Positions 1-54,914 of a stretch of DNA of 64,000 bases are shown here, piece after piece (position 1 is the stretch's first letter; each line of letters begins with the position of its first letter). The translations under genes were made by a program, and so were the position numbers. The notes beneath the pieces were generated by a model. It was not told the origin of the DNA. It worked only from the letters and a program-made list of their open reading frames with translations, and did no database searches. The DNA comes from Setoptus koraiensis. Its lineage: Eukaryota > Animalia > Arthropoda. The stretch spans positions 12,462,001 through 12,526,000 of the forward strand of contig CM106585.1 in the NCBI GenBank assembly GCA_048013815.1, written 5' to 3'.

Positions 1-2585
1 TCGTGCTCCTTGAGCGATTCCATTTCTTTGCGCAATTCCTCAAAGAAATTCTCCTTGCGTTGGTGGTACTTTTGTTGACAACAATTGTCCAAATGAATAT
101 CGTCTATCTGCCAATAATCCAGATCATTTTGGAAGGCCATAACGCACATTTCGTCGGGCAAATGTAGCTTGCCCGTTCGGTAATAATCGAGAATACAATT
201 GAATGATTTCGGCTGCCGATCAAAATAAAACTCGTTCGTTTCTAGATTGAAATCGTCGCAATAATTTAGCAGCGATCTCAATTGTCTCATTGTCAACAGA
301 GCAACAGCAACAAAACTGTTACTGTTATCGCCCGGCTCACTGATGGCTCGCGCCGAATTTCTCGAGTTCAGCCTGGCCGCGCACTCCACGCTGACGGGCT
401 CCACCTTATCATTTCCGGTTGGGTCATCTTTATCTTTATCGGTTGCAGCGGCTCGATTAGTTGGCGCTTGGCCGTGAATATAATTGTGACTGTAATTGCA
501 TTGGTGCTCCTGTTGCAACAAATTGTGGTCGTCGTGAAATGGCTGGCGTGGTTGCTGTTGTTGTTGTTGTTGTTGTTGTTGTTGCGATGAAAGTTTTGTT
601 TGTGGGGCAGTTGGCGATGCTTTTGTATTGGTGCTGTTGCCGGTGGTGGCCGGCATTGGAGGTGTGGCGGCGGCTAGCGGTGGAGTTGGCGATGGCGAGG
701 CCGATGTCGACGGCATCGCTCTCGGGAGTTGCGTTTGGTGGTTGGCCGACGACGAGGCCGACGGAATCTGATGACAGGCAACGAATGCCAGGCGAGCCAG
801 TCGCGTATTGGGCACCCTCAGCAACGTTGACCACAGCACCTCGTGCTTGACGCCGCCAACATTCAAGATGCACCGTGTGGCCCCATTAAACGAGCAGCGT
901 CTCGTTGAGGTGCCCGACGAAATGTTGTTAGACTGGCTGAATCTGTCGGTGAAGTTGTTGTTCATGCTAACGGCCGAGGTTGTTTTCATGCTCTTGCCCA
1001 TCAACGAGGCGCTTCCTTGGCTGCCGATGCTGTTCACGCGGCTCCGGCTGCCCGAGCTCGGCCCGGTGGCCGCCCTGTCCCGCATCTCCGCATTTGGATG
1101 CTGTTGCTGGTATGGCGATTGGTTGGACAACGGATTGGACAGGGCAATTATTTTGGCTAGCGATTTTTTGCTGCGCAACCAAAATTTCTTGCCCCGACTC
1201 AAATTGTTGTTGTCGCTGTTGTTGTTGTTGCCGTTGGACTGTGTTGTTGTCGGCTGTCGCATTGCATTTTTTAGCCCCGCTGTTATGTCACCCAATTCCA
1301 TGTCGCACAAATTCGTTTCACTGCTCATAAGTTGATGACGTTGCTGCCTTGGCAGCAGGCGACGCTTTTTTCCTGGTCCCGTTTGTCCGGCGCCAAATCC
1401 GTTTGAGCGAACCATATTCTTCTTGTTATCCGGTATGGGTGTTGCGTCGTCGTAGGACAATGGACGCTGCCGATTGGAACGGGAGCTCAATTTACAATTG
1501 TTCGTTGCGTTGTGTAAATTCATCAGCGACAAAGTGCTGCAATGTTCAGGCCGGATGTAATTAGCGAAATCGGGCGATTGGGATCGTTTCATGGATAACA
1601 TCTTGTGAATTGGACTGGCGCTATTGCTGCAATAATGTTGCGGCGATCGCAACTTTTCCGCAATGGATCTGGTGCCCATGAGTCGCTCTTCGTCGTCATC
1701 ATCATATTGCGCATAATTGGGTATGGTGGACCTATCGAAGGCAGCTTGTTGATTGGTCATGTTGTTCAAACTGCAAACACTGGCCGAACTGAGGGGCAAT
1801 TTTTTTGGGTGGCGCGAATGGGTGGCATCGTGTTGCTTGTGCTTGCAATTACTATCGTTACAAAACTTTCCAATTGAGGCCGACGAGCCGCGCCGGGCCA
1901 ATGACTCGAGCTGATGCTGATGTCGGCCGTTTCTGATGAGCGCCGGCTGCCGATGGCGGCCAATTTTTCCAAAATTGAACGAGGTGTCAAATTTAAAAGG
2001 TAAATGCTGCTTGAGCTGACTTTCGGCCTCCGTCCATTGGTCTGCCGGTGCCGCCGCTAATGTTTGGCGACGCTGCTCAATGTGGGCGCTAGTGGCGTAA
2101 TCGTGGGGCCCCAGTTGCCGGTCGAACAAGGGCCGAGATCTTACATATGGCGTTGCTGGAGTAATTGGAGTGGCGGGCGTAATAATGGCGCTTGGTACTC
2201 TAATGGTGGCCATATCAGAGTCTTGTTGTTGCGACTGCTGGCGCTGTTGTAAACTGGCGAGAGATTTACGATCTGATTGGTCTATTAAGCGGGCGTCTTC
2301 GTTGTTATTTGGTGCCGTTGTTGCTGTTGTCGCCGTTGTTGGTGCTGCTGGCGATGCCCCGTCAATTGTGTCAGTTGCATTGTTCGCTTGTCGAGCCTCC
2401 GGCACAACAATGTTGTTGTCGTGGTCGTCGTTGTTGCCGTTGCCGTTACTGCTGCCGTAGTCGTTATTGTTGCTGTTGTTGTTGTCGTTGCTGGATTGGC
2501 CGGCTAGCATGTCGCTGGCATATGGAAGTCCAGCCTGCGGTTGTTGGCCCCCCTCCATTGTATCTTGTTGTTTATTAAGCGCCAT
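1..2585 (-). CDS. Shab: Voltage-gated K+ channel Shab/Kv2, 5' part (N-terminus and T1 domain; ORF continues off the left edge)
   Basis: Manual translation of the minus frame starting at ATG 2585 ([13 protein letters not shown]...) is open to position 1, with an in-frame TAG just upstream. It contains [29 protein letters not shown] (~875-789) and [75 protein letters not shown] (~275-50), which match the Kv2/Shab T1 domain. It is missing from the ORF track because there is no stop in the window. Confidence 0.93.
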
Positions 2586-2591
2586 TGTGCA

Positions 2592-2640
2592 CTAGGTGTG
2601 CAAGTGTGTGGGGCCCGGCTTCTGCGAGGTGTCCACTTAC
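2592..2640 (-). other. Candidate 49-nt 5'-UTR intron of Shab
   Basis: Minus strand reads gtaagt...cacctag, ending 6 nt before the ATG at 2585. The upstream segment has an in-frame stop, so it would be UTR. Confidence 0.3.
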
Positions 2641-12251: not shown

Positions 12252-13902
12252 ATGGAATTTTCGTCCGCCGTTGTTCATCACCTGTTGATGATGAGCCGCC
12301 GCCATCGCCGCCGCAGCTCGCCCAACTGCATCTCCAACAATAACAAAGTCGTGTGCTCCAACCAGAGATGCTGTTTTCAATTGCTGGCAACATCGTTTGT
12401 CTACAGCGCTATCATCGCATCACTACTGGCATCAATGTTACACGCCTCAGTTATAAATAGCCACGAAAATTTAAAATTTAAAGAGACCCTCACAAGCACG
12501 TCACATCGCCATTCGAGGCATGACGACAGTGAGTTAGCCGAGGCCTCGCTGGCAGCGCTACCCGATGAGCGGCCACCCAGCGCTCATCGACGGTATCGTG
12601 CCACTAATAATCAAGGCGACAACAACAACAACAGCAACACTTCAACAAGTGATAATGAGACGAGTGAAAAACGCAAATCGCGCTTTAAACGCAATCAAAT
12701 TAATTATTCTAGTCAATCGAGCACTAATGATCATGTGAATACAGTTAACAACAACAACGATGCTGGTTGCCCTTCCAACAAATTGCGAATGTCACTGTTG
12801 CCTGTTGAATTGCAGCAACCGCAACAACAATCGTCCTCCAGAATGGCCAACAACAATAGGCAGACATCGACGTCTGCAGCCGCAGCCGCTTATTGTGAAT
12901 GTCAGTCTGACTTTTTGGGTTGGCAAATCACTTGCTATGATCCTGGTCCCATCCCTTTGTCCATGACAGCATCTAGGCAGCAGCAACAACATAGAGTTAC
13001 TAATAATATTCCACACCAATTTCATCCCGCTTTCTTGTTGAAATCACAACAAAACCAACAAGCTAGAAGATACACAAATAGTAATAATAGATCAAGTGCA
13101 TCGCTGTTCGACGAAGTCAAAATAGATAATAATAAGTCAAGTGACATGATTAATAGCAATACAGCACCATCGTCAAGATTGAAAATATCCAATCTGCTCA
13201 CTAGAAGGACTCGCTCTCTCGCGTCTAATGCTATATCACAGCTTTATAACAGTAACGAAACAAATCCGAACGTCACGCGATCAACTTCGGCCACGTTGAT
13301 TTCCAAATTACCCACAACGGTTCACTTGGATAACGAGAAAGGGCCCTATGCCAACGATGTCAGTGGTGGTGGCTTGTCGAGCAGTGATAGCGCATCAATT
13401 GAAAGTATCGATAATAATAATGGCAATGATCAAGATACAGTGAGTGGATTTGACGCTGACTTGTCTCATGATTTTTTAGAAAATGCAAACAGCAACAACA
13501 ACAATAATAATCACAACAACATGAACTATGGTGACCAAACAAGTAGCACTGAATCGCATCACCATCACTCAACAGAATTCTATAGAAACAACAACAGTAT
13601 TGGTCTAGGTAGTAGCAGTCAGCATAACCAACACCAAATACAAGGTCATCATAACTCACCCGAAGGCAGCCATTTAAATCTGATGCATGACACAATCACG
13701 AACAACGACGACGAAAGCAACCAATCTATGGATGGATTCATATCTTCGCCATCATCGCTGTCATCGTCATCATCGTCATCGGCATCGTCTGTTTCGTTCC
13801 AAACTATACCAAGCTTGTTCTCTATCAAATATTTACGCAACACCAATATCGAGATAGACTGTGATCAACTAGCTCCCAACTATAGGCCAGCAATGTTTCA
13901 AG
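12252..13902 (+). CDS. Tl: Toll receptor, exon 1 (hydrophobic signal/anchor segment and N-terminal Cys cap, interrupted by N/S/Q-rich inserts)
   Basis: 1651-nt reading frame from ATG 12252 ends at CAA G|gtaagt (phase 1). It contains CECQSDFLGWQITC and FSIKYLRNTNIEIDCDQ, the N-terminal cap of protostome Toll-1-type receptors. Confidence 0.8.
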
Positions 13903-16900
13903 GTAAGTTGTATAAATAGTAATAACTTTATTATTATTATCATTATCAGCGCTATATTGCCTTAAAATTGAATGATGTTGCCCCAATAGTAATAACTCAT
14001 AGTTAGTCGAGACTATCAGAGAGTACAATTACTGTTGTGGTTGTAGGATAAAATTAGCCCAACTGCGCATGCTAGAGGAGGACCATGCATATCTAATTGT
14101 GTGTGTGTGTTTAACCGACAGACAGTAATATCTCCATAATAGTATTTTATCCTCCAAATCATGTTCATCATCACAATGGATTTGCGAAGCTACGACTAAC
14201 TTGAGACTGAAATTTAGTTATTCATGAACTAGTTATGAATAACTTTGCAACCTAGAGTGGATAATGATGGTCGTGAGAGCGTTGAAGCGTCAAGTAAAAC
14301 CCAAATATATTGCATCATCATCGAAGGTGCTTAAAGCTTATTATTCATCAAGATAATGCTGCATTAACTGCTGAATTATTATTATTACATGTATTATCTA
14401 TTTTGTCATGCGGTGCCCATAAGGATCATTGTTATTGACAATCGAGATGGATATAATTATCATCATTATTGTAATTTTCTTCTCTTGATGGATACTGATC
14501 AATGGTTATAGTCTGACGCAATCACATTCTAGTACCACATTTGACATCTCATCGAGATAGATATATCTAGTAAGCTACAGCGAGAGTCATAGGCTTGTGA
14601 ATGATGAAACAATCCAGCTACAAGTTTTTTGTTCCTCCATGCTCATGATCATGATATGCATGCATCTAATTTCTTGTATGTAATAGCAGCAATAGTGATA
14701 GTAGTAGTAGTGGCATGGGTTTTTCTGGTACTGTTCTATCTGTATGTCAAAGTAGCTACAGAGAGCATCTTGCGGAGCAGAGCCTACAGTCTACCTTTAG
14801 CCATGTCTAAATCTCATTCATGTTTTTTTATTATTGGTGTGACATTAAGAAAAGAGAGTGGCATCTATATAATACAAGGTCATGAATTTGGGCTTCTACT
14901 CACGCAAAATGCTGATATCGATGGCGATCATCATAGGCTAAGAGAAAATATGATGTGACATACTTTGGAAAGCCATACAAAGTTGTTATGTGAAGTAGAA
15001 ATGTCGCAATAGCATATATATTTCTAGTTTTTACCTTACGAAATATTGCAGATTATGTTTTGCTCCTTACGATGAATAATTGATCACTTTCAACTTCAGA
15101 ATCAAGTGTCAAAGTTGATGGCATCACTTACAATCCATAGTACTGTCAGCCGCTGGCAAGACACTTACGCCGACACCCTTTGTTATGCATGCATGAAGAG
15201 AATTATGAATGGTGCTTCTTATTGTTTTTATTTGGAGAGCAAGATAAAAATCAGATAGGGAGAGAAAGAGAGTTCAACTTTAGTTTAGGTGGGGCACCGT
15301 GTTAGTGCTTCTATCCTTAGCAGTCGAACAACTAGTCAAATAGAGATAGAGAGAAATTTGACTTGTGTGACAGCGTAATTACAAATTAAGAAGAATACTC
15401 ATATAGAAGAAAGAATAATATTATTACGACGACCAGAACGTTCAAGCGCATTGTTATCAAAGATTGAATACTGCAGCCATGATTATCGTATTTCTCTTTT
15501 GGCTTTTTTGGTAGTAGTCGTCGCCTTGTTGGTTTACTGCGCAAGAGGGAGATATAAATGTCAGTGTTGGTTTTAGTGGTCATAATATTCTGCATGAACA
15601 CACAAACACAATTCTAGATGATGATTTGTGCGATAGTCACCAACGCCAAATCAACAGTTTCTTCACCCAAGTTTCCCAGCTCGCACATTATTGTGTGTAT
15701 GTGTTTGCTTGATTAGTTGTCTTGGTATCTTGTCAACGCATTCTACAGATAGACTTGCCATTCCGTAGTGATTACGTCATTACCAATTAGAAGAAAACAA
15801 CGACGACGACAACAACAATCTTCTGGCAATAATGAAAGGCAAGGCGCTTGCACACCACACTGCCACTACTATTACAATAACTTGGTGTCTTCTTGCCTGT
15901 GCATTCGCTCTATGTATAAGGCTAATGTTCGAGCAGGGAAAGGTTCTGCAATATTGTAGGAATGGTCATTAGAATGTTGATAGAAGAGAGTTCAATGAAC
16001 AATTGAGCAGTGCCTAGGAGTGGATAAAAGTAAGGCAGTAAAATACTGCCGATACAACAGCTAATGATACGTAGATCCCTAATGATGACGTGATCTATGT
16101 TGAGCCTGTTAGCTCCGGGGCTTTATTCCGAAGGGAGAAAACCCTCGCCTATTGGTGTCAACAGCAGCAATGATTAAACTAGGAGAGTGAGAGAGGGAGA
16201 GAGAGAGAGAGAGAGAGAGAAAGCGAAATAGATTTTTGTTATTTTTCATTTTCTCACTTCTGCGTTATTTGTTACTTTTATCTGTTGTTCTCGCTCCCTT
16301 TCACTTTCTACACTTTCTCGACGACCAGACAGCTAGACTGTTTGGTGGTGGAAATTGAGTCTGGAGAGTTTCAAGGAGAAAGAGTGTTTGTGGTGACGGC
16401 AGTCGCGCTGGTATCATAAAAGTGCCCAGGCAGGTGGGTATATTTTCGTTGTTGTTACCTGACACTTGCCAGAACTAGTTGCTCTCGAGTGTATAGAATT
16501 TGTTCTCTGCGTAATGGGTTTTCTTGAAGTAGCAGTGGCAACATTCGAGCTAACAAGCAGCAACTACGACAGCAGTTGGAAATTTTACCTTTAGGCCAGC
16601 TTGATAGGTCTGAGTAAAGACAACTATTATGATTTTCGAATTTAACAAATACTCAAAACATGATCAGGCCAATCAGTTATTAGATCAGACACTTTTTGCA
16701 ACCATGCACTTGTTAGCCCAGCACAATATATCGGCAACAACGACAACAAAATTACAACAATATTGCCGGGCGCACAGGCGCACAAACACATATCACATGC
16801 TATTTGTGTTTATATCATTCTAAAAATCTGTTTGAAAAGAATCTACCTGTCAGTTGGTATGGATGAAGCAGAACTGTGTTCACTTTTGCTTGGCATGTTG

Positions 16901-17693: not shown

Positions 17694-17726
<33 letters not shown>

Positions 17727-18062
17727 AAGAGAGAGAATGGTCGCTTCGTCTTCGCATCCGAGTAAACGGACTACATACCGATAAATGTTGCCAGTGAATG
17801 TTATTATGTTGTGTCAAGCGAGTTAACAAATTAGCTAAGATAAACGAGTGTATATATTATTGCTCTTTAGAAGTCGATTTTTTGATCGAAAATCCTTAGT
17901 ATGTGTCTCTATGTGTGTGAACAGAGCGAGAGTGTCTAATCGAAGTGTAATCAATTGTGGAGACCATATGTGAATGCCGACAAATGCCGACTGTTTATTG
18001 TTGTATAATATTCAATAGACACGGATGGTGTTGATTGTGGTTAGCGAAGCAATTTTTTCTTG

Positions 18063-18063
<1 letters not shown>

Positions 18064-38220: not shown

Positions 38221-38335
38221 TATTTAGTTGTTTGGCCCATTCAGTTATTCAGTTGTTTAGCTATTCAGTTTTTTAGCTATTTAGCTGTTTAGTTGTTTGG
38301 CTTATTTAGCTGTTTGGCTTATTTAGTTGTTTGGC
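38221..38335. repeat. Degenerate 8-9-bp tandem repeat (TTAGYTGT / TTAGCTAT family) downstream of tetraspanin A
   Basis: About 12 imperfect units visible directly. Confidence 0.7.
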
Positions 38336-38442
38336 GTGTTTGTTGGTTGAAATGGCAATGGCAATTGTGAGCTATTTTAATTGTTGAACTGTCACAAATA
38401 TAAGCGCTAGTGAGCGCACACAGACAAGCACGCCGATAATAA

Positions 38443-39341: not shown

Positions 39342-40292
39342 TTTGCTGGGGGGCGTTGAGGATTTCGCGCTTGGCGCTTGGCCGTTGTCGCCGGACACAA
39401 AAACACGGAGTTACAATTTCGCAGTTGCAGATTCTCGTCGATCGTTTGCTCTCGATAATGGTCGGCAATAATTAATAATTATTAATACTTGTTGAATCAC
39501 TCGTGCGTCCAAAGGCAATGCGTGCTCAAAGTGTCACAGTGTCAGCGAGTTACAATTAGCAACACTGAAGTGGGCAGCTCATAATCCTGATTGGTTAAAT
39601 ACTGAAATGCTGTTGTCGTTGTTGTCGTCGTTGTTGTCGTTGTTGCTGTCGTGGTTGTTTGATGAGCGATTCATCAATCAAACGCGATGTGAAATGTGAT
39701 GTGTTTGCAATTTTACTTTGTTGTTTTCGTTTCGGGCGAGCATGTATGATTTGTGTAATCCGATGAAGTGACTTGTGAGAGAGATAAACGCCGCTGCACA
39801 TTTGTTTACATGACTATAAACGATGACTCAACTGCGATGCTTATCAGCGCCGGCTAACAATAATTAACCATCTGCCATAGCCATCAGTAATGAGTCAGAC
39901 GAGAGAAACGATGATACGATTATTGCATTAGAATGACTTTATTGCATGAGTGTCGTACGAACACCATGGTGCAACAAATAGCATAACAATAGCAATGACA
40001 CAATTATAAGCGACCAACCATGAGATTCTCTAGCGAGCTGACACACAAATCAGCGCAACTCCAGACAAACAACAAACACTGCCAGTAGCTACCGTGAGTA
40101 GCTTGCCAGTGAATCATTTCAATCAGTGTACGATAATGTGACACAGTTGGCATTTCGCAGGCACGTATCGGCGCCACATTGCGGATATTGCCCAACCTGG
40201 TTCGACAGGCACCCTTTGCGCCGATTACTTATCAATTGTCGCAACGAAACTTTTTCACATTTTACGCAAGCTAACAAGTGGCAAGTGGGCCT

Positions 40293-40350
40293 CAAATTAG
40301 TGTGTCTAACAAGCCAAATTAGCGTGTCTACAAACCAAATTAGTGTTTAA
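40293..40350. repeat. Three copies of a 21-22-bp unit (CAAATTAG[T/C]GTGTCTA...)
   Basis: Copies start at 40293, 40315 and 40336. Confidence 0.7.
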
Positions 40351-40596
40351 GTGAGTGACCGTATGATAACAACAGCGACAGTAATTGTCAGTTTAATGCA
40401 ACAGTGTCCGCGCAACAAGCCCGCGCTCATGCAAACATTGGCCAGAGAGAAAGTCGCCAGAAAAGTGTGCAACATCCTGCAAAATCAATCACAGATTCAT
40501 TGATTGACTGATCACAACCGTGGCATTGAAAAAGGTGCCAATTCTTTGTTTATCTCGATTCTTTTTTTCACCTGGACACAAGCGAGCAGAGCGCCG

Positions 40597-42988
40597 TCAG
40601 TAGAATTGGTGCGACTTGTAGCCACTTATGAGGCTCAGCACACTTAAAAAGGCGCTTGCGGTGGCCGCCAACAAGACGGTCAGGTTTATGAGTACCACTG
40701 GCAGCTCAATGCGATGGTAGCAACTCGAATAGGAACTAGGCGACTCCGTGCAGTGACCGTACTCACTTCCGTCGGATCTAATTCCCACGCTTGGTTGCGG
40801 GCAGCACGATTTTGGATAGGAATTTTTGTCGGGCGACAAAACGAGCCATTCGTTTTTGTTGTCCAGACCGCAACACTCGAGTCTGCTCTGCAGATTGTCC
40901 CAAAATTGGGTGACATTCCTCTCAATATTCTTCGTAGAGTCTTGCCCTCCATCCCTGTGCGCTTCCTCCGAGGCTTGTGGTTGGGGTTGTTGTCCGCCCT
41001 CAGTGCCCACCGGAGACGGCGCGGTGGCGCCCCCACTCGAGTCACCATTGACCGGCCGTTGGGGTTCAACAGCAGGGGGCGTGGTGTCCTCATTCGGACC
41101 ACCGCTGACCGGTCGTTCAGCCTGATTCGGCTTCTCCGGCGATTGCGGTTGTGATGGTTGTGACTGCTTCTGCCCTTGACCGTCAGCGGTGCCCCCCGCA
41201 GAAGGCGTGGCGGCCTCATTCGGATCAATGCTGACCGGCCGTTCAGCCTGATTCGGCTTCTCCGGCGATTGCGGTTGTGATGGTTGTGAGTGCTTCTGCC
41301 CTTGACCGTCAGCGGTGCCCCCCGCAGAAGGCGTGGCGGCCTCTTTCGCGTCAGCGGTGACCGACTGTTCAGGCTCCGCCGCAGAAGGCGTGGCGGCCTC
41401 ATTCGCATCAATGCTGACCGGCCGTTCAGCCTGATTCGCTTTCTCCGGCGATTGCGGTTGTGATGGTTGTGAGTGCTTCTGCCCTTGACCGTCAGCGGTG
41501 CCCCCCGCAGAAGGCGTGGCGGCCTCTTTCGCGTCAGCGGTGACCGACTGTTCAGGCTCCGCCGCAGAAGGCGTGGCGGCCTCATTCGGATCACCACTGA
41601 CCGGCCGTTCAGGCTCCGCCGCAGAAGGCGTGGCGGCCTCATTCGCATCAATGCTGACCGGCCGTTCAGCCTGATTCGGCTTCTCCGGCGATTGCGGTTG
41701 TGATGGTTGTGAGTGCTTCTGCCCTTGACCGTCAGCGGTGCCCCCCGCAGAAGGCGTGGCGGCCTCTTTCGCGTCAGCGGTGACCGACTGTTCAGGCTCC
41801 GCCGCAGAAGGCGTGGCGGCCTCATTCGCATCAATGGTGACCGACCGTTCAGCTTGATTCGGCCTCTCCAGAGATTGCGGTTGTGATGGTTGTGACTGCT
41901 TCTGCCCTTGACCGTCAGCGGTGCCCCCCGCAGGAGACGTGGCGGCCTCATTCGCCGGAGGAGGCTTGGTGTCTTGAACCGAATCACTGCCGGCCTGCCC
42001 TCGATCCCTTCTCGCCTGCTTCGGGGATCGCTGCTGCAGTTTCTGTGGAGATGTCTCCTGATTAGGATGTGGTGGTGGTGGTGGTGGCTGTGGTCCAGGA
42101 TGTGGTGGTGGTATCTTTGGAAGTACGGATCGTTGGATGTAACTGGCAAGCACCGCAGCGGGCTCCGTGGCGTCTTTGATTAGCGTGGAAAGTATGCCGC
42201 TATTTCTGGTCAGTCGGATGGTCAAGGTGGCCGGCGACTGCGACGACAACGACTCTTCTTTTGGGGCCTTCTGCTGTCTGTTCGCCGGATCGCTCGTGTG
42301 TGTGGGCCCGGCTCCTGGCAAATTGTCATAGTTAGTTGTGGATGATGCAGCTTTTGGCGTGCTTGTAGCATCACTAATGTGTGACCAATCGTACTTATCC
42401 ATGGCCCCGTCAAACTCATTGCCCGGCTTGATGGTATCTCTGACATTTGGCACGTAATAAACGACAAACAATAAACCCAGTATCATGTTGGCGATGCACA
42501 AGCCTGAAAGCTGCTCACACAAAGGTCAATCATACAAAGTTCAAGGTGTAATTGATTAGATATTGTCCGTAGTTACTAGCTTGGTGGCTTTTTGTAATTA
42601 GAGCGCGAACGCCCGAGGCATTCAGTGCTTAAACGTATAAATGACGAGTGCTTATAAATCCACTTACCAGTTTAATGAGGCCCCTCCGTTTATATATTGA
42701 GCCAGTGCAGCCAATCATGCTCAACAGTAGCAGATAGGCTGCGGTCAATAAGAGCCAAGTGGTGTAAAATCGGGGCCATTGATTGTGCTCGCCGAGAGTG
42801 GAAAAAACATCTCTAAAGCAGACGAGCAATCCTATTATCAGAATGGATATGAAGGCAAGTGACACACTGCCAACTAACAGGATGAGTCGACAGGATTCCC
42901 AAATAAACGAGATTATCCTTTCGAGAAACTGAACTATTCGAGAGAATAATCCATTTATTGAATCGATTATACCCTTGTTGCCTCGCAT
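40597..42988 (-). CDS. Divergent tetraspanin B with a ~480-aa repetitive insertion in EC2; join(42988..42668, 42510..40597), ~744 aa
   Basis: Exon 1 encodes TM1-TM2 (...LSMIGCTGSIYKRRGLIKL|gtaagt). Exon 2 encodes TM3, the insert, FWDNLQSRLECCGLDNKNEW...YPKSCC...C...SC and TM4. Same intron position and phase as tetraspanin A. The start codon could lie further upstream. Confidence 0.88.
41071..41928 (-). repeat. Coding higher-order minisatellite of 126-nt (A) and 57-nt (B) units in the order A-B-A-B'-B-A-B-A-A
   Basis: A = GGTADGQGQK[H/Q]SQPSQPQSPEKPNQAERPVSIDANEAATPSA (42 aa). B = AEPEQSVTADAKEAATPSA and B' = AEPERPVSGDPNEAATPSA (19 aa each). 5x126 + 4x57 = 858 nt. Confidence 0.95.
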
Positions 42989-45900
42989 TGAGCGGCCGAT
43001 CGCCTCCTTTGGGTCACTATCAAACAATTATAAGTTTGTTCTTGGCTTAAATTTAGAACGTTGGTGCTCATTTAGATTTTTAAAGTTGACTAATAATTGA
43101 GCGTTTTTGTCGTGGGCGCAATAAATTAGTGCATTCGATTAATTAATGCAATTTGTCATGATGCAAGCGGCCTATTAATACTGTGGTAAACAAGCCACGC
43201 GCTTAGACTCACAGGAACAAACACACATGCCCAACAATAACACTTGTTATTTGCTGATGTGAATACGATCAATGGGAAGACAGTGAAAAGATTAGCCACG
43301 ATGCTGGGGTGCGCGATCAAGGTCGAAGATACAAACAAACGAAGTGAATGACAAAACAAAAGTCGAAGATCTCAGCCAAGAGTGTAGAGAGGCGCCCATG
43401 AGAACGTTAGCAACCATTGAAGCAGCGATCCAATGAAGCAATCACTGGATAATTGGCCGTGTTCATGCTCGATTGCATTAAATGCATCACAACAATCGGT
43501 AGTGAGCACTAGATTAGATTGATCAGACCAAAAGATTACACACAACATAACAAGCTTCGTTGCAGTGTTTAATTAACTTTGTATGTGAGCTGACAATCTT
43601 GATGCCATGACACAACAACAAATTGGCAACAATAGTTAGTTAGTAGGCAATTGTTTATCTTGGTAGTGTTGGTTTGTTTTCTTTGTTTCCATTTCATTAT
43701 GCTCCAACATCCAATGCATTTGATGATGAAAGCTGTCGTTGCCAAGATCAAGATATCGCTTTGCGGTGCCAATCAGCCAGATAACACAATCTTCGGCAAT
43801 CAATGGCTTGCTACCGAATACCTGATTACAGTGCATAGCTAGACTTGTTGATTAATTAGACTGATAATCTATTGTGTCTCTTGTGTTTTGAATTGTTACG
43901 CAAATAACTGCTCGAAAATGCACAATTTTCCGATGAGTCGGTTTGCTCTTGAGAGCGAAAAAACTGTGGCAAATTTCGATTGCATTCCAATCAATTTTAG
44001 CGAGCCTTCTCTTGTTCGAAACAACGTCAAAACTATGGCCAATTATCGTCATCCTGTTATTGACCAGATATGGATGGAAGTGACGGGTGCTTTTGGGCCG
44101 ATTAATCCGATATTGGTAAGGGTGGCACGATGGGAGATTGCAACAAGCTTATTCCATGCAAATGCACTAGAGCTCGAGAACAATGGCCTGATAGTTGGGA
44201 GTCAGACGTGTCCAAGAAGCATCTTGTTGTCGATACTGTCGAGTGAGTCCAAAAGTCGGGCCACCGAAAAGAAGAGGCAACCACACCGAAGAGGCCCCCA
44301 AAGCCCGGAGCCAAAAGCCAAATGGCAAGCAACACTGCCAGCTATCAATGTCTCGGCATTCATTGGGCACAAACAACTAATTGGCCCGTCCGGTTTACTC
44401 TGGGGCCCAGCGTATGGGGGCAGAGTTTCGTCGCAACAATGCACTGGAGCAGCCAGAGAGCCGATAAGCTGATAAATCGATAAGTCTACACTCGACTTGA
44501 GCTATCACTTTGGCCTAAATTCGCCCCAGGTTAGCCCGGAATCGCTTAGTTTAGCCAGAGGTTTGTGTGTGCTTGCATCTAACGAGCACACATATCCATG
44601 GATGGCCATCCATTTGGAATGGGGCGCCATCTCAGGTACTTGCCTTTAGATGAGTCGATTTGCTTGGCTGGTTTCGGCGAGCCAAGCAAATCGACAAAGT
44701 TTCCAAGTTGACACTTGGGAGTGTCTTGCAAAAACAGTGTTTCTTTACGTTTGCACAATGGCCTCATGATGAGTGGCCAAGTTACCGGCTCGAGTCGACA
44801 CCGAACGATTCCTTATATCGGAGGCCGTTTCTCTTGTATCGCTCTTGTATTGGATTCGTTTTGCTGCCCAAGCTATGCGAAGCACATAACCGTTTTGGGT
44901 GCGGATTCCAATAAAATTATCTATGCATTAGAGAGGTACAAGCTTCGAAGGAGCCCCGAAAATTCCGCCTCGGCAGACAACAATGCATTTCGCGGAAATT
45001 GTTGAATTGGTTGGCTGGTCGGCATCAAAAAGTGTTGTAGTCGGGCGTCACTTCGATCACTAGCTAGCGTCTGACAGTGTATATTCCTAATTGGAAAAAT
45101 AACGTTGCTGCACGAAACAACGATTGCAGTCAAGTCAAGTGATTCTTCTTCTCCAATCGTCGCACGCATACATCATACTGATGGGCCGGTCCATCTATCA
45201 GCGGTGTATCTATGGTGGCGGGCTCAGTCGGCGGCCAACTATCGACAGACAACTCGCCTGAGACAAGTGGCCCATATCCTGTCGGATATGGGGCCAGCCA
45301 GTCGCTTGTAAATGGAATAGACGACGACGGCGGACATAATTCAATTTTGTTTGCGACCACGGGGTAGCATTGTATAAATTGTGTGAGACCGACTGCTACT
45401 CTGCACAAATGGGGCCCCGAAACCGCGCGCCTCGTAATAGAGTTATCAAAGTCTGCACTACTGGATGCACGATCTAAATGGTGGTCGGCCATTAAATTGC
45501 CGTTCGGGCCAACTTCCTTTGGATGGTCTCGCGGTCTAAACAATGGGCCCGCTTTTATTATCGTGGCCATCATCGTGCCATGGGCGGCAGGGTTGAAAAT
45601 GTAAACCAAAATTGTTATTTGGTTGTAATTGGACACTGACGCAACATGAACAACGAGGCACAGTGGCAAAGGGGGTACGATTGTGATTTGTGTGCGCCGA
45701 GAGGAAATAATCCAGCCCGACACAGAGAGTCAATAAATAGACGTGTCACCCGATTCAGCGACCAGGCCGAGCACGAGATCCGGTGATTATGAGCGGGCCC
45801 ACTGATAAAGTACAAAACTGAAGAACAATCTGGCCATTTATTATCTGTCTATCTAACGAGTGTCGGATAAAATGTTATCCATCTTTTTGGTTGCTCTATA

Positions 45901-48625
45901 TTAAATCACAGTCTATTTGTGGAGCGCAAGTAGCGACGCCGAGCTGGCTCGCGCTGGCCTCGGCCAGCTCCAATAGTGGCAATTCGGAGCAGCACCACTG
46001 CATTCGTTCCCAATTATCAACGGTTCGTCGTCGACAATTGCTTACTTATCAATTCTTCAATTATCCCTTGAAGGCTGCTGCTGTGGATGAGACAAACTCG
46101 CAAGTGATAACACACAATTGGGTGATGTGCTGGAAAACGGGATATTCACCTGAGAATATCGCCCCATCGGCGATTGCAACAAAGAATTTGTGCCTGAATT
46201 GGCTAAATTGTGAGCCATTCAATTGTGTGCCCTCTGGAGACCGTGCGGCTGGTCAGCAAAGTTGCACAAAATAGATCGTGTCACTCGACTGGCCAATGAC
46301 CAACAAGCAACGGCTGGCTGACAATGCCGAGACACACAATGCGACCATATCCGCTTTTGTCGCTTTTTATTGTGGCAACACACAGTTCAAGTGAGCTCAA
46401 CTCTGGGGCCCCATGAGGCGTGAGCCGAGTGTATTTGTGTGTGTGTTCGCTTCAGTTGACGCTCGCTGTTATCTCTGGCAAAACACTGAACACGAGGACT
46501 CGTATGTAAGGTTAAATATATAAATTTTATTTATTTTATTCACACACATACACATCCACGAATCTCAAGAATTACGTAATAACGACAGTCGTATGGCTGG
46601 CGATTCTCGAACAACACTTGTGAGTGTGTCATTAATAATCGCACGCTTTGAGCCGCCGAAAAGGGGGCCCGTTACGGTCGCTGTGGCCGACGGATAACTG
46701 GCTAAAAGCGTGTCTGCTCGAAGTGGCGAGACAGCAAGCTCAGTGTGGGGCTTCGATTGAGAGCGAGCTGGCCGGGTTATTACACGACAGAATGGGTATT
46801 ACTTACTCACAGTTGAATTGTTGGCTTGGGATACAATAAAAAGAATTCAATTGAACATTCAATTGAGGCTGGCTCGTTTTAAATTTCTTCTTTTCTATTT
46901 GCAGTTATACCATAACGGTATCGCTGGTACAAATCTATTGTTGCACCGCCATGGTAGCATCGTAGATAACTGCTGGCGGCAACGAGCGCGCCAGAAGTTT
47001 TTGTCACATGAGACGCGACGATGTGAAGGTTGCGGGCTGGCTGTTCCTTGCGGGGCCCCCTCGATGATCTGTCTGGGCCTGTGAGGCTGCCAAGCGACGC
47101 CGCTAATATTGATAATGGCACAGGCCCCGAACGACAGGTACCGACCCGACGAGCAAGTTGCGCTGCTCGCCGCCGCCGGGCCGCAGCAACAAACCGCAGC
47201 CACATTACAAACGCCGGCAAAAATCCAAATGCATTCGGTCTCATTTCCCCAAACAGAGCCGAGTTTTGAGCATCAATGTAATTTATTTGCTCTCCCCTCG
47301 TATGCCCTCTACTCGTATGCTTTCTCATGTAATCACGCCAGCCAAGCCAGCGGCATCTATCAAGATTGACGCGTTCGGGCGGGTGGGGGGGGGGCCGTCG
47401 CGCAAACGCGCCCATCATTAACTGGCCGCACGGCCAACCAGCAGCGCAAATGTGATTATGTAACGCGTTGCTCGCGCAACAAAACAATCCTACAAGCCCC
47501 AGTAGTTTAAAACTGTCCATGGATATATGGCCGGGCATTGGGCGACCGCCGGAACCGCTGCTGCCAGCACGCCAAGGCGAGCCCCCGAATGGTGGCCGTT
47601 TGGGGGGATTTGTGCGCGAGGCTTAATGGGCACGACATCATCGAGATGAGTTACTCTGTTTGTTGTTGGCCAGAGTTGGTTATAGTTGGAGTGTGTATGC
47701 TAACAAAAGATGTTCCGTTGTCCGAGCATCGACTCGCTCATCTGCATGTCGCTCCGGGGTTCGCATTTCGAACCCGGGCGAGGCCCCCCCGTCCGGAATT
47801 GCGCCAGAGAATCCCTGCTAGTTGGAACTTTGGCCCACAAGATCCGGGGCTGGTTTTCTAGCGGCCCCAGCGAACTCGCTTGCCATTAGTTGCAAGTGTG
47901 GGCCGTGCAGCCGTGAAGCGGGGGCGCCAGCTTGTCTGTGTTTCTACGGTCTGTCTGTTCGACACACAAATATCCTGTGCGCTCCTGGCGAATTTTCCAG
48001 CCCGCCAACACAATTCGCCCCCTGAGGCGGGTCCCTGGCAGTGGCTGCAGTTGAGGCCCAGCACACAAATTAAACGCTCATGATAATGTTGCAAGTCGCA
48101 GAGATCGTCGCTGTCGACATTTATCCGCGCGCGCGCGCGCCGGCAAACGAGGGCCCCCGACGGGCGCACAAAAAAGTTTGCACATCCAGCCCAACCGAAC
48201 AACGGATCATCAGGGGCCCCATTGAGCGCACGAAGCTAAAATGGAGACTTTGTTCGTCCGCGACATCGCCATTTCCAGCGGCATCGTTAGCTCGCGCACG
48301 TGAGAACGTTGCCATCGTTCTCGTCGACGGCACGAGAGGCTCGGCTGCTGTTTAGGGGGCCCGCTTTGCGCTCGACGGCAATAACGACATGCATTCTTCA
48401 TAATATCGCAATATCACACACAGAGCACACTGAATAGCAGCAGAAATCGCCAGACAGAAGAAATTCTCTGACGCTGGCAGAATCTCGTCAGCTCGCTGCT
48501 CAATAATGCCCAATATATATCATTCATACTATGAATTTAGCAGTTACAAATTGAACGTGCTCGTATTACGCAACAGACAATATCCACTCGGTTGGCCGCT
48601 GTTGAAGTTGCCAAGGGGGCCTCTT

Positions 48626-48674
48626 CTATGGGGCGCTTCTATGGGCGCTTCAATGGGCGCTTCTATGGGTGCCT
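48626..48674. repeat. Four copies of a 12-bp unit (CTATGGGCGCTT)
   Basis: Units start at 48626, 48639, 48651 and 48663. Confidence 0.8.
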
Positions 48675-50502
48675 GTGTCGGTGGCGCTGTGGGTGCCAGT
48701 GAGTGGCAGCGGTGCGTGCTACGTGATACTGTCATGATAAAAATTGCAATTCTCGCTGCTCTGGCTTCTCGTGCTTGCTGCGCCGCTCTCTCCTCGGAGT
48801 TGCCGGCGCCATCATTATTGCGTAATAGATCGAGCATATAGCACCAATTACATATTAGAGAACAAGTGGCACAATTGAGACAGATGGGGCCAAGACAGGC
48901 GAGCGCGTGTTCGCACGTGCTCCTGTCTTGCCACGTTGGAGACCCCATTCGAATACAGTGCACGGTCTACAGCCGAATGTATTGAGTGTTTGTTGCAAAA
49001 ATACAACCCCGGGCGCCCCAATACTGCTTGCCTGTGTCCAACTATCTCGAGGCCATTTCGATCTGTCCCTGCATTATAATTATACAATATCAATTCGAAG
49101 AAAGCCAACCAACAGCCGCAGCTAGCCACCCAATAGAGAGATAGAGAATGGGCAGGAATAAATTATAAACTGCATCGCTGTATCCAATCTATGCCTTTGT
49201 GAGCCAACCAGTTTGGGCTTGCCAAGTCGGGCCTAAATGAAATTACATAATCAAACTCTCTCGCGTGGGCGCCTACGTAATGCACACGACACATGTAAAT
49301 CGAAAGTAGTTTGCAATGATACATGCCGGATTTCGCCGGGTGGTGATATTCTCCGTTACAAAGTAGAATTGGCACTTGCATGTATGCACCAAGTACGAGC
49401 ACCAATGTTGGATATACTGTATATATCATATACACATCAAATGGTGTTCGATTAGATGGATGCGAAAAACAATAAATAACCGCGATTGCAACGATAAAAG
49501 CGAACTCAATTCAGCGTCGCATTCAGCTTAAATTGATAGCCACCGACTGACTGTAATGGCCAGAATGTGTCAATTCTGGCTCTAAATTCGTTACGAGCTC
49601 GCTCGCATGGGAAAAGCCTCGGAAATTTCCCTGATAGATTAAGGCACCCTATCCAGACCCAACATCTGAACCCGAATCATTTCATGTACAATAACTGGCG
49701 CCTCGTACTGAGCGAGTCGTATCCGCTCATGCTTGATGCCTAGTTAAGTTGTCTTTTTGGGCACCTCACGAACCTTGAATCAGGATGCGTCCAACCTGGA
49801 CGTGTTGCCAATGCGCCATCGTCGTGTCGCAAAAAATGAGACTTTCTAGAGCCCCCCCCCCCTTGACCTTGGTGTGTTAGCATTAGTTTGACGGCAGATA
49901 GGCCAGCATGCTGGCGGCCCATTTTGGCTAAGATAATCATCTAAATCGATGCAACCCTATGCTCGATGTCGACACTGTCGCTCATTTATTCTCGCGTGCA
50001 ACATCCACTCAGAGGGGCGCCTATCAGCATCTCAGGGGCCTTGTAGATGACGAACTGGCGAAATCTGAAATGAAACCACTTCCCAACTTGAGGGCCTCAA
50101 GTCTTCTCAGCGGCCGATGTCGGGACTGAAAAACAAAGAGCTCAGGGGCATAATTGAAATCATTGAATGTGCCTTCAGAATCTGATGATCAGATAAAATT
50201 CAGACGATTATTATTGAAATAGCCGAATGCCATAAGATTGCAGATAACTGTCACCGTGTTACCGTTATACAAGATATTGCATGAGATTAAGAGAGTATTA
50301 AGAGAAAAGAACAAGGCGAGGCTAGTGAAACATCCTGTTTATTAGTGACCCAATAATGACAAACAACGATCAATTGTCAATGGAGGCAATTGTGGTAGAA
50401 AAAATATAGTCGTCTATCGATAATATATGTACAACAATAATAGTAAGCTGCTCACACAAGAAATCGACCGATTTCAATGACAACACAGTTTTCCAGCATC
50501 CA

Positions 50503-53022
50503 TCAATAATTGATTGCTGCATTTGTTGTGGCGCTCTGGCCCAAAAAGGGGCCCCTGGGCGATTTTTGGCCGCTGTCCAGCGCTGTTTGCGCTTGTCCGT
50601 GTTCGCTAATGATAAAATTCTCGTCGAAGTTACTTTGTCTTAAATTGCATAATCTTGCAGCAGCAGCGCCCTTCTTGATTGGATTACATTGATTAGTTTT
50701 GGACAATTTGCCATTGCGTCCATTGTGTGCAGACGACGATGCCTGCTGATAAACGTCCGCTGAGGGCGACTCATGATTGTGACCGTTAACGGTCCCATTC
50801 ACCAGCCGCCCGTTGGCCATCTCTTCCACATGATAACTGTTACTCTTAGAATTGTCACAATTGTCTCGGTGACTTGGCGAGCTCAGCGGACTCAGTTCAA
50901 TATCTGTGCGCGTTGCAGTATCGCTGGCACTGTCCAATGACGACATTGAACTGGCCGGTCTCAGGTGACTGCGACCGTTCATTTTTTTGCCGTTAGCTTG
51001 TTGTTGCTTGCAACGTTTGTTTGCATTCTTTTTTGCTTTACCCTCCATATTTGTATTGGCAGCATGCGGTGTTGCATCATTCGCAATCATTGTTTTGACG
51101 CTGTGACAATTGTTGGCTTGACCATTCAATGTGGGCAATTGTGTGGCGCGCAACGGCGATCTTATATGATTAGTGCGCTGTTGTTGTTGTTGTTGTTCGA
51201 GTTCTAGTTGTAGCTGTTGGCCATTGTGGCCCGTTGAGACACGTTTGTTGTCGCTGGACATGTAGCGAGAGTTGTTGCCGTTGCTGTTGTTGTCGTTGTT
51301 ATCGTCTTCATCGACGTCGATGTCGGTGTGGAAGGAACGCCGCAGATAGTGCGATTTATCTCTATTCTTGGACGAGCTAAATTCGAGATATTCGTAGGTG
51401 AACGCGCCAAACAGACCCGCAATGAACGGCGTCACCAGGTAAACAAACTGACGATTGTTGTATATGGACCAATGGCCGGCACAGGTCGGTTGTTGCAACG
51501 ATTCGAGCAGTTGCAACCATTCGAGCAGTTGAATGGATTAGAAGATGACAAAGATTAATTGTGTGATTGCAGCAGATACCGGCCGCCACTGATTGATATT
51601 GTCGATTTGATGAGACTCAAAAATCAAAAGTTACCCTCAAAGGTGAGAGTGGCTTACCCATTGATTGTTCCAGCGTTGTGCAAACAGAGCTAGCGACATG
51701 AGCTGAAATGGATGCGCATACAATCCGCCCGACAGGCTCTAATGGCGACAATGATCGGGTGACAGTTTTGACGCAATGCGATTAGATTTGATTTGATACG
51801 AGCCGAATAATGGAATTTGCGGACAAGAAGACGAAGAATAGGAAAACAAACAATGAGTTAACGTAGACACAAAAGCTGCTCGCCAGTGTGACAGTTGGCG
51901 CTTCTTCTAATTGCGTAGCACGACAACCGGCCAGACAATCGGCTCTCAAATAATGAGAGTGTCACATAATCATACCAGACTTACGGACTATAAACACTCG
52001 ATAAACACTGGCGCTGGCTGGCAGCAGCTGCCAATCATTTAATATAAATCTAATATCGCCAGCAGTGTTTCCATTATCAACTGTGGACGAGTGCACTTAC
52101 CGTGAACGCGTAGCCAACGAAATAGGCCAAGCCGATGGAGAGCGATTTAAAGCCCAGGTCTTGGCGGGCCGGCTCAACATTTGCCAAATATGTCAGCACT
52201 ATCAGCAGTGTTGCTATAAATTGAAAACCAAACAATTGGCTGCTGTTAAACAGATCAGCGTTTGTAGTATCTATGTCGGCAGTGTGAGGCGCTTTGTTGG
52301 CCTCTCTTCTGTCGTTGTTGTTCCAAATTTTACTAATGTTTTGATTCGGCGAATTGGGCATATTCAACGCACGGCCATTGTTGTTGCTGTTGCTGTCCGA
52401 CGACAAGCCGCTCGCATTTGATACACGGTGCACAACGGCGCTCATTTTCTTTCCGTCGTGATGCAACTTGAACGCTGTGACCGGTAGAGCATAATCAATC
52501 ATTGATATAATTACATCCCTTCTGCCAGACTCAAACAAACCACTAGCGCTAGTGGCGCCCAAGGCTAACGGTGTTGCCATTGTCGATGTCGATGTCGGTG
52601 GCATCTCAAACAAATTTGATGGTAATTGCGCGCCAGCCATTTGGCCCCTTTCCAGGTGAGCGTTGCGCCCCTCTCCTATATAGCGGCGCTTTCGGCGTCG
52701 GCGTCTCTCCCCGTCGGCCGACTCGTCGGTCAAACCGCTTGAGCTGGGGCCCACCTTTTCAGGCCTCTCGTATTGCGTTACATTCAGGCTGGCTGCTTGG
52801 TTGCGGCCCCTGCTATCACCGCTAACACTGCCGATACTATTAATATCACTACTATCATTAGTAACATGAGAATACTTGGCAACGTCGCGCAGCCTATCTG
52901 CTCTATCTGTTTTATCTATACCACTGACTCCAACCGCCAATTGTGCGGCCGAAGAAGTTGCCGTTCCCGCAAGAGCATAGGGGCGCATTATTTTCGCCGC
53001 GCCCCTATGCTTTGAGCCGACG

Positions 53023-53063
<41 letters not shown>

Positions 53064-54914
53064 AATGTTGTTGTTGCCGGCGTTGGTGCTCGGGCCGCTG
53101 GCCACCATCTCACCTGTGCCAACCTCGCTGCTTGTGTACGGACTCCAGGCTGACCACTGTCCATATTGAGTTGTTGCTGGCTGCTGTTGTTGCTGTTGTT
53201 GCATTAGATGGGGGCCAGAGGGGCCACTGGTAATCTTGTTAGCTTCGTCCTGTTGTTGGCGTCGCTTTTTCTTCCTATTGTGCAGTTCATCCAATATTGA
53301 TAGCAGAATTAATTCGCTACCATCACCTAATAATTTATTGCCAGTCGCCAGTTCATTGGCACTGGTGGTTGTAATTGGTGGCGCCACTGTTGTCGCAGAG
53401 CTCGTTGTTGTTGTTGTTGTTGTTGCTGCTGCTGTTGCTGTTGTCGTTGTTGCTGTCGGAATTGTTATTGTCGCTTGGACGGCCGGTTCGCGCTGTTGTT
53501 GTAGTTGTTGCTGTTTGTTTGTGTCGCGCACAATAAGCAACTCATTAGTGTATTCTGTCACTGGCAACGACTCGTTGGCTTCCTCAGATCGTTTAGCTCT
53601 CAGAAATCTTATCTGATGGCTAAAGTCATGATTAAATTTGTCTTGCATAGAGGCTTGCATACCAGCGACCGTCGTAACATTGTTAGCGCCGTCCCCTAGC
53701 AGCATTTGCATTTCTCTCAAGGGAAATTCAGGTGAGTCGCCGCTGCTTGCTGTAAGATAGCTAACTGGTATTGATAAGTCGCCTCTATTCACACTAACAC
53801 CTAAGCCTGTATATGGGGCTCCTAACTGCACTTGCTGTTGCTGCTGAGTAACGGGCATTTCTACTATGGATGCCGATAAACTCCACAATAGGGTCACCGC
53901 GATAATTGAGCCAAAGAATTGTGCAACGAGATAACAAGTGAAACGAGTTGAAGTAATATGCCGCCTAACTAACAATGCCAAGCTAATTGATGGGACTATA
54001 TGACAGCCGCTAATATTTCCAAATATTTGCGTCAGAGAGGCCACTGTAAACGCTTGAAACAAACCATTTAGTAAGGCCACTAGTAACAGCGACAATGACA
54101 ACTTGTCGCCGGTACCCTGATTATCTGTGTCGCTGTTAGATGGCCGATTGAGACCGTGATTGCCAGAATTGATAGTGTCACCAGAATCGAGGTGATGCAA
54201 CAATGGCGAACTTGCATAGTGGCTCTTGTTGTAATAGTTTGTAGTTATCAACAATTGCGTTGTTAATGTAACAAATAGCAATGATGTCAGAAATTCTGTA
54301 CGGACACATTTCCAGAATTGATACGATCTCAGTTCATCGCTGGCACTCACATCATTGGGCACAGATATGAGATATTTGTATAAGGAATTGAATTTGGTGT
54401 ACAAAAATAAATTCGACGATGTTCGCTGATGGTGCCGCTGCTGATTATGATAATTAGGCTGATTGATTTGCTGTCTATGATGATGGTGGTGGTCGGGTTG
54501 AGAACCGTATTGCGCACCATAGCTATCTGTTTGGCTATTTTTGGACATCGCTGGACACTCAATTAGCATGGATTCGGATACAGAAAGAATGTGAGGCTGT
54601 TGTTTTGGCTGGGGCGAATTATGACGATACTGGCGATAGTGTTGCTGCTTATCTGATGCCGCTGATGAGGATGCCGTTGCTGTTGTTGTTGTTGCATGGT
54701 TTAGTTGACGCCTCTCGTGCGATAAAGACGATGGTAACTTTGAATCATGAGAACTATTTCGCTGCGATATCGACGCCAAACCGGACTTTTTCGATATTGT
54801 TTTCTTCATTGGCGACTTGTCATACGTAACTTCAAGGGCCTCCACAGATAGTTGCGTAAGAGGCGACTCATCGGGAGAATTGTTTGCACTAGCACTAGTT
54901 TTATTGGGTGGCAT
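50503..54914 (-). CDS. bib: Big brain-like aquaporin (MIP family) with degenerate NPA boxes; join(54914..52101, 51738..51658, 51447..50503), ~1,279 aa
   Basis: ELRSYQFWKCVRTEFL (TM1), ASLTQIFGNISGCHI, IVLTYLANVEP, SIGLAY, RWNNQWFVYLVTP and TYEYL align with the Bib subfamily pattern as I recall it (EIRTLEFW, ATLTQCFLHISGAHI, SIGCAY, KWDSHWVYW, VYEYI). An 81-nt internal exon not in the ORF track supplies loop E. Both introns are phase 0, GT-AG. Confidence 0.8.

Follow-up and report, generated by a model that had tools for sequence, protein, structure and literature searches.

Why should conserved membrane proteins be interrupted by long low-complexity segments in a genome whose neighbouring genes are compact? 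This question is raised by a 64,000-nucleotide stretch of DNA from the mite Setoptus koraiensis (GenBank assembly GCA_048013815.1, contig CM106585.1, positions 12,462,001 to 12,526,000 of the forward strand), hereafter called the window, which is gene-dense and has a GC content of ~44%. It encodes Shab, a Kv2-type potassium channel; a Toll receptor; a tetraspanin (tetraspanin B); and a channel protein of the MIP family resembling Big brain (Bib). In each of them, a conserved fold is split by 100-960 stop-free codons rich in N, Q, S, T and P, located in the T1 domain of Shab, in Toll, in the second extracellular loop (EC2) of tetraspanin B and in loop C of Bib. An earlier interpretation made from the letters of this DNA (the sequence-only reading) had attributed the inserts to a lineage-specific process by which surface and neuronal proteins in particular gain disordered loops. 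Our analysis makes a different explanation likely, namely that the inserts are coding, mostly disordered loops that are old in Toll and Bib, have been lengthened by slippage and are purged from housekeeping proteins.

Results

Coding potential of the inserts

By every sequence test available, the inserts are protein-coding, and we infer that they are translated in vivo. They are in frame and, as the sequence-only reading had described, long and free of stops: none contains a stop codon in the frame of its host, compared with 3.5-49 expected from shuffled sequences, and nearly all of the other five frames do contain stops. The probability of observing no stop is ≤0.001 for inserts of at least 104 codons and 0.009-0.024 for two short Toll inserts, while the absence of stops from a 46-codon segment in loop A of Bib is not significant (2.2 expected, P=0.10). 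When a codon model was trained solely on coding sequence of the window outside the inserts, each insert scored above zero in the frame of its host and below zero in the two others, whereas the introns of Toll and Bib and intergenic DNA were negative in all three. Real introns in the window start with GTAAGT, and no consensus donor (GTRAGT) is present inside the Shab, tetraspanin or Bib inserts. In alignments to Kv2.1, AQP1 and CD63, the inserts fall between secondary-structure elements. A search of sequencing runs for the species retrieved no RNA run. Two further signals were discarded. Apparent splice joints in three DNA contig sets from the same species, which contain the Bib intron, proved to be cross-matches of GTT-type microsatellites, and whole-codon insertions or deletions between Bib variants of other species that are 98-99.9% identical were not used as evidence because of ascertainment bias.

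Toll inserts recur at matching sites in related mites

The Toll protein comprises 3,339 residues, in agreement with the ~3,340 estimated previously, and is obtained by joining an exon at 12252-13902 (plus strand) to an open reading frame (ORF) at 23545-31947 (2,801 codons). Exon 1 is rich in N, S and Q and encodes a signal-anchor-like start, a Cys cluster and an LRR-like end; it terminates with the phase 1 donor CAAG|GTAAGT, and an acceptor at 23581/23582 restores the frame. Its last 38 residues are 76% identical to a stretch located 2.5 kb upstream of the Toll ORF in the relative L007, with which the donor and the exon junction are shared. The intervening intron of ~9.7 kb (13903-23581, plus strand) carries (CT)n and (GA)n microsatellites; when all of its ORFs of at least 55 codons were read (a Pfam scan was not applied), no gene, no long ORF and no protein-like translation was found. 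This intron stands in an intron-poor, compact region, and its homolog measures ~2.5 kb in L007 and ~1.1 kb in the spider mite Panonychus citri.

Exon 2 (23582-31947, plus strand; Pfam LRR_8, LRRNT and TIR) forms one open frame encoding LRR blocks, caps, a transmembrane (TM) helix, a split TIR domain and a tail. Its architecture is co-linear with that of mosquito and spider Tolls in terms of LRR blocks, cysteine caps, TM helix and TIR domain, but it departs from these proteins in that inserts break up the TIR domain, each LRRCT cap and the second LRR block. In addition, ~960 low-complexity residues (24052-26934, plus strand; 0 stops vs 48.9 expected) lie ahead of the first intact LRR block; this stretch is flanked by small conserved LRR islands (residues 48-174) and also contains such islands (residues 882-914). 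The stretch before the first shared anchor comprises 806, 754, 272 and 537 residues in the window and three close mite relatives, and it is the only segment of Toll that varies widely.

The inserts within the domains behave differently from this N-terminal stretch. Five of them, delimited by an anchor table at 28312-30384 (plus strand; residues 1590-1653, 1721-1944, 1988-2060, 2104-2151 and 2178-2280), lie in LRRCT-1, the second LRR block and LRRCT-2. The LRRCT-1 insert has 65, 58, 67 and 56 residues in the four mites, as opposed to 8 in P. citri; another of the five sites holds 148, 141, 149 and 117 residues, and those of the second LRR block and LRRCT-2 show a similar pattern. The same sites contain only 1-27 residues in the Tolls of mosquito and spider. 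The TIR insert of ~100 residues, placed by anchor alignment in the loop between helix A and strand B (30745-31047, plus strand), measures 102, 119, 122 and 94 residues in the four close mites and 96 in P. citri, compared with a single residue each in Anopheles and Parasteatoda. It includes an RR..SFQDLSTMSR...SRIMM motif that is kept in the four close mite Tolls. We note that this motif resembles a basophilic kinase site and that a second motif in the insert, D(T/V)LV(T/Q)(E/D), is likewise conserved in the four proteins. Overall, the window protein is 49-90% identical to its three closer relatives in the domain blocks and 22-36% identical in the inserts. The relatives are encoded by uninterrupted single ORFs of 2,398-2,860 codons, with inserts at matching sites, most of which are also found in P. 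citri. Downstream of Toll, L007 additionally contains a 1,385-codon ORF without a Pfam match (13683-17840).

The P. citri protein, a 1,891-residue Toll-like receptor (LOC128387182; P0125), shares the two-exon layout of the window gene, the 96-residue TIR-loop insert and further inserts at several of its LRR sites, but it is ~1,450 residues shorter and lacks the LRRCT inserts (7-8 residues vs 56-104). In its NCBI model, a short exon is followed by a giant one of 5.2 kb, within which the inserts are retained; the single intron is located as in the window, with none at the insert sites. A spider Toll relative is encoded without introns.

Loop C of Bib contains conserved islands

Exon 1 of the Bib-like gene (52101-54914, minus strand; 938 residues; Pfam MIP, 4.2e-22) encodes a cytoplasmic N-terminus and TM1-TM5, which align to AQP1, and ends at a phase 0 donor, GTAAGT, at 52100. 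The ORF of the last exon (50506-51537, minus strand) specifies a TM6-like segment, FVYLVTPFIAGLFGAF, followed by an N/Q/S-rich tail, and matches the TM6 region of the full-length relatives P0246, P0250 and P0256. Between TM3 and TM4, loop C extends over 534 residues (52260-53861, minus strand), slightly more than the ~520 reported before and compared with 9 in human AQP1; loop A has a further 46-residue segment relative to AQP1. Attempts to join exon 1 in frame to the downstream exons failed: a segment similar to the second pore half-helix (…GICCNHTINL…) and the TM6 exon lie in different frames, and within 51480-52100 (minus strand) ~110 nt without any AG precede the candidate acceptor TGTGCAG|G. 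DNA contigs of three runs agree with the window at the 3' part of the gene, which argues that this is not an assembly error. The donor downstream of TM5 remains in use in the window, and the gene is split in like manner in closer relatives.

An exhaustive HMMER search identified 221 relatives, and 20 of the best-scoring ones were mapped for loop C. In 18 of these 20, the loop comprises 210-564 residues, with 11 and 52 residues in the remaining two, which are short MIPs. Loop C consists of conserved islands within variable linkers rich in N, T and Q. The islands in the window protein (minus strand) are RAKR (53583-53597), a helix (53235-53318), RKKKRR (53262-53279), R5KRR (52683-52706) and a hydrophobic motif at residues 801-815. 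Among 19 sequences, R-x-K-R, a GSE(T/L)ILLSI helix, RR-x-KR-x-R and hydrophobic motifs just before TM4 are kept in at least 14, and the islands are shared by full-length relatives that differ widely in composition. Two of the three closest relatives lie on contigs with a gene every 1-2 kb, mostly single-ORF and intron-poor. The inserts as a whole are predicted to be mostly disordered, as had been claimed; the folding-based prediction covers Bib, for which AlphaFold2 run on the Bib alignment gave a predicted local distance difference test score (pLDDT) below 50 throughout loop C except for the helix at residues 533-560 (up to 86), in a model that is weak overall (mean 42.8). As a separate observation, the furin-type sites RAKR, RKKKRR and R5KRR (52683-53597, minus strand) coincide with basic runs that are conserved in most Bib relatives; cleavage at these polybasic sites would sever the channel between TM3 and TM4.

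The first NPA box reads HIVPS in the window (53950-54000, minus strand) and HL(L/I)PS in the relatives. A second box, GNP(V/A/M), is retained in P0246, P0250 and P0256, and no intact counterpart was found within the window. Such altered boxes argue against a water pore, not against descent from MIPs, and the whole Bib-like clade probably does not conduct water. Other searches with Bib were uninformative: a word search was swamped by low-complexity words and gave one match, a protein Atlas search returned generic aquaporins only, and the literature searched yielded no report of an extended loop C in mite Bib.

Shab and tetraspanin B

The 5' part of Shab (3-2585, minus strand; Pfam BTB_2, 2.7e-25; phmmer against human Kv2.1, 2.9e-37) encodes an N-terminal low-complexity region and the T1 domain, and the gene runs past the left edge of the window. 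Human Kv2.1 (KCNB1) is the best PDB match for this domain; both T1 halves (Kv2.1 residues 32-62 and 68-157) align well to structures such as 9o10 and 7re5, including the zinc-site residues, whose H, C and CC positions are present in the second half of the Shab domain. The two halves are linked by 5 residues in human Kv2.1 and lie 169 residues apart in Shab, which bears out the reported split of the domain by ~165 residues. The insert, delimited by the Kv2.1 alignment (291-785, minus strand), is rich in A, Q, S, P and T and includes a run of 11 Q, 10 of whose codons are CAA. It contains 0 stops vs 5.7 expected and has a codon score of +0.10, positive in the host frame only. A metagenome scan for the Shab T1 domain gave no match.

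Tetraspanin B (40600-43027, minus strand; Pfam, both exons) consists of an exon encoding TM1-2 (42632-43027), a ~150-nt intron (GTAAGT...CAG) and an exon encoding TM3, EC2 and TM4. In EC2, ECCG and SCC motifs can be read, and the domain aligns to that of CD63 with an E value of 0.0095. Here, an insert of ~486 residues rich in P, A, S, Q, G and E (40921-42378, minus strand; 0 stops vs 13.4 expected) separates helix A from helix B and the CCG motif, close to the ~480 residues given earlier. Within it, Tandem Repeats Finder detected an array at 41078-41955 with units of 57 and 126 bp that are 91-97% identical. The 25 best self-offsets are all multiples of 3 (25/25), although they reduce to these two independent units. 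Its tandem paralog, tetraspanin A, has normal size (38446-39410, minus strand; the Pfam Tetraspanin profile matches at positions 11-76 and 79-220 in two adjacent ORFs). Located 1.2 kb from tetraspanin B and free of an insert, it provides an internal membrane-protein control.

Several homopolymer runs in the inserts are codon-pure, including N14 in Bib (all AAC), Q11 in Shab (10 CAA) and P6 in the tetraspanin (all CCA), and other runs are mixed. Codon purity of this kind points to recent slippage. Together with the tandem units of tetraspanin B, these runs support the earlier suggestion of coding microsatellite expansion.

Compact genes and their neighbourhood

All named genes were recovered by Pfam at the positions assigned to them previously. 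The compact ones comprise RPS23, the core exons of GLD2, PTGES2, GRP94, PSMB1 and tetraspanin A. CSN1 (55481-57085, minus strand), PTGES2 (58296-59678, minus strand), GRP94 (60628-62880, plus strand) and PSMB1 (63099-63785, minus strand), all identified by Pfam, are compact single ORFs, consistent with the claim that their coding sequences lack introns. The RPS23 ORF, as read from the sequence, has no start codon, which implies a 5' intron. The assertion that housekeeping neighbours are minimal holds for RPS23, the GLD2 core, PTGES2, GRP94 and PSMB1 and needs qualifying for CSN1, which has 535 residues vs 485-487 in Tetranychus and Brevipalpus. Its excess of ~50 residues is partly due to a Q-rich tail, which accounts for a 20-residue difference from a sister species, a difference that also speaks for slippage.

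A contig of this sister species (L001) has an identical gene order throughout the block from CSN1 to PSMB1, with protein identities of 87-96% and a DNA identity of 82% over 8.8 kb; for CSN1, the values are 97% over the conserved core and 96% over the whole protein. Among named sequences, CSN1 is closest to that of the eriophyoid Fragariocoptes setiger (69%). L001 ends 475 bp past CSN1 and does not reach Bib, and in the CSN1 neighbourhood of Fragariocoptes no Bib gene adjoins CSN1. Between CSN1 and PTGES2 lies a 135-residue ORF (57737-58141, plus strand) without a family assignment, which has counterparts in L001 (6948-7412, 87%) and Fragariocoptes (L002, 9089-9484, 30%). The region at 36000-50500 has an elevated GC content (0.49-0.56) and contains ORFs of 190-250 codons without a Pfam match (37388-38092, 43852-44469, 45133-45729 and 46882-47622). 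Across 50450-56449, three public DNA data sets carrying two organism labels differ from the window by 3 bases in 6 kb, with no insertions or deletions, indicating either very low diversity or the same material.

Discussion

The sequence data suggest that the inserts of Toll and Bib are loops of ancient origin with fixed positions, in which slippage keeps changing the linkers. We propose that the disordered segments sit in surface loops of conserved folds, that is, between the T1 halves, between helix A and strand B of the TIR domain, in gaps of the LRRs and caps, between helices A and B of EC2 and in MIP loops A and C. The positions of the Toll and Bib loops would have been fixed before the eriophyoid mites diverged, and most Toll sites before the split from spider mites. 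These loops would be composed of short conserved motifs spaced by linkers, with the linkers of S. koraiensis lengthened and homogenised by replication slippage, as indicated by codon-pure runs of N, Q, T and P. The tetraspanin B insert may have been lengthened by recent in-frame tandem duplication. Old permissive loops, some of them with functional short motifs, could thus grow and shrink through slippage and unequal exchange, whereas stronger purifying selection would purge insertions from abundant, tightly packed housekeeping proteins. Given such a selective filter, which we infer, a membrane-directed process would be unneeded.

Several points weigh against this interpretation. The taxonomic depth of the Bib relatives and the close Toll relatives, which come from Logan, JGI and ENA sequences, is gauged by identity alone, and the inserts of Shab and tetraspanin B may be young and species-specific. 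Moreover, the tetraspanin B insert has the weakest coding score (+0.008), and a second frame is open for 497 codons through its array (40689-42179, minus strand), so that freedom from stops is by itself weak evidence in this region. The differences between its repeats are spread evenly over the codon positions (8/6/6 and 10/7/10) and thus give no sign of constraint at the peptide level. Finally, four of the five membrane proteins in the window are inflated as opposed to none of the six soluble ones, a contrast that is nominally significant by our own calculation (hypergeometric p ~0.015), although the membrane class in this 11-gene comparison is confounded with non-housekeeping function and the pattern was noticed before the test. 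A class bias toward membrane proteins may exist.

This contrast is an argument for the process envisaged by the sequence-only reading, which would selectively equip surface and neuronal proteins of one lineage with disordered loops to build a glycocalyx, release peptides or form condensates. The tetraspanin B insert would fit such a role, as it is extracellular, rich in P, S, T and A, tandemly repeated and mucin-like, and so would the extracellular loop C of Bib with its polybasic sites. We nevertheless judge this explanation improbable. The inserts of Toll and Bib predate the lineage, given that their sites recur in three other mites and mostly in P. citri (Toll) or in 18 relatives (Bib), and the notion of lineage specificity fails for these two proteins. 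By the established topology of their families, EC2, loop C and the LRRs are extracellular, and T1 and TIR are cytoplasmic. Since the T1 and TIR inserts as well as the long ends of Shab, Bib and Toll are cytoplasmic, neither a glycocalyx nor shedding can explain the inserts as a group. In addition, tetraspanin A is a membrane protein without an insert, a Q-rich tail is present in the soluble CSN1, and the choice of the window followed the recognition of the pattern. Selectivity for surface proteins is thus unproven, and the contrast between compact and inflated proteins more likely reflects the usual differential constraint than a special process acting on surface proteins.

Two further explanations invoke introns. 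Some or all of the inserts could be missed introns or alternatively spliced in-frame segments, leaving mature proteins of normal size. The weak coding score and the second nearly open frame of the tetraspanin insert would be compatible with this idea, and tetraspanin genes often have an intron in EC2. However, we consider it very improbable, because stops are absent from one specific frame over up to 961 codons, the codon signal is confined to the host frame whereas true introns score negative, the frame stays open at shared sites both in Toll, over four to five species, and in Bib, over 18 relatives, conserved motifs lie within the inserts, and consensus donors of the kind that start the real introns are missing from those of Shab, tetraspanin B and Bib. 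Alternatively, the inserts could be ancestral introns that were exonised as an intron-poor lineage ceased splicing and acquired their low complexity later. Eriophyoid genomes have lost most of their introns, according to one report (PMC7738191); neighbouring genes in the window are intronless. Furthermore, the inserts lie between structural elements, where introns are often found. This proposal, also raised by the sequence-only reading, appears very unlikely to us in view of the intronless spider Toll relative, the single P. citri intron that matches the place of the one in the window and lies away from the insert sites, the occurrence of the Bib loop in relatives of very different composition, and the continued use of the donor after TM5, at which closer relatives are split alike.

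It is possible, though we hold it only tentatively, that the conserved parts of the inserts are selected functional modules, with the low-complexity sequence serving as spacer. Examples would be cleavage of Bib loop C at furin-type sites, from which two half-channels or a released peptide would result, and switching of the TIR loop by phosphorylation. Such a role is suggested by the retention of R-x-K-R, RR-x-KR-x-R and an amphipathic helix in at least 14 of 19 Bib sequences, the helix being the only confidently predicted element of loop C, by the conservation of the RR..SF.DLSTMSR motif in four Tolls and by the persistence of the loops in relatives on gene-dense contigs. However, basic runs are common in disordered regions, conservation of the motifs fades in P. 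citri, and the conserved motifs come from the Bib and Toll comparisons. More doubtful is the bolder proposition that, in this mite group, surface loops at fixed positions in ancient signalling proteins have become regulated modules. In Bib, an extracellular loop of 200-560 residues with its conserved furin-type sites and helix would mediate halving of the channel or release of a peptide, and the conserved TIR motif of Toll would act as a phospho-type motif, the filler being tolerated as a spacer that survives even in certain genomes ranking among the most streamlined of animals.

If the loops are indeed coding and of long standing, coding filler at long-kept sites can extend single mite proteins to between two and five times the normal length. 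Eriophyoid mites are a textbook case of genome streamlining, with loss of introns and genes, and non-coding streamlining and the inflation of coding loops could accordingly coexist. For annotators, ortholog lengths and domain scans are misleading in such cases, as the halves of T1, TIR and MIP domains lie hundreds of residues apart. Moreover, loop C of Bib with its conserved basic sites and the motif in the TIR loop represent two testable modules. A process directed at surface proteins would matter more if true, but it is not supported. A text search of two eriophyoid genome papers returned no mention of low complexity or protein length.

Low-complexity insertions are also known from Dictyostelium and from developmental genes of Drosophila. 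The Big brain protein of Drosophila has a short loop C, intact NPA boxes and long Q-rich cytoplasmic ends. The mite protein resembles it in its TM1-TM5 blocks, which align, and in its Q-rich ends, whereas the mite Bib and its 18 relatives differ in having a loop C of 210-564 residues and a first box reading (L/V)PS. Mucin-type ectodomains with variable number tandem repeats (VNTRs) are similar to the tetraspanin B insert in that they are extracellular, rich in P, S, T and A and built from near-identical in-frame tandem units; in the mite protein, the repeats sit inside the EC2 loop instead of forming a stalk of their own. The closest parallel to the inserts as a group is provided by Plasmodium falciparum, for which the presence of low-complexity insertions that keep the reading frame, within domains and near them, is well documented (PMC7534687, PMC11260460, PMC3140889), so that the mite case adds to an already known type of phenomenon. 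Like those of the mite, the P. falciparum inserts are Asn-rich, prone to slippage, in frame, enriched near disordered parts of domains and fast-evolving. The mite, by contrast, is a metazoan with a GC content lacking an extreme AT bias, its inserts are of mixed N/Q/S/T/P composition, and those of Toll and Bib occupy positions that are conserved across species and carry conserved motifs.

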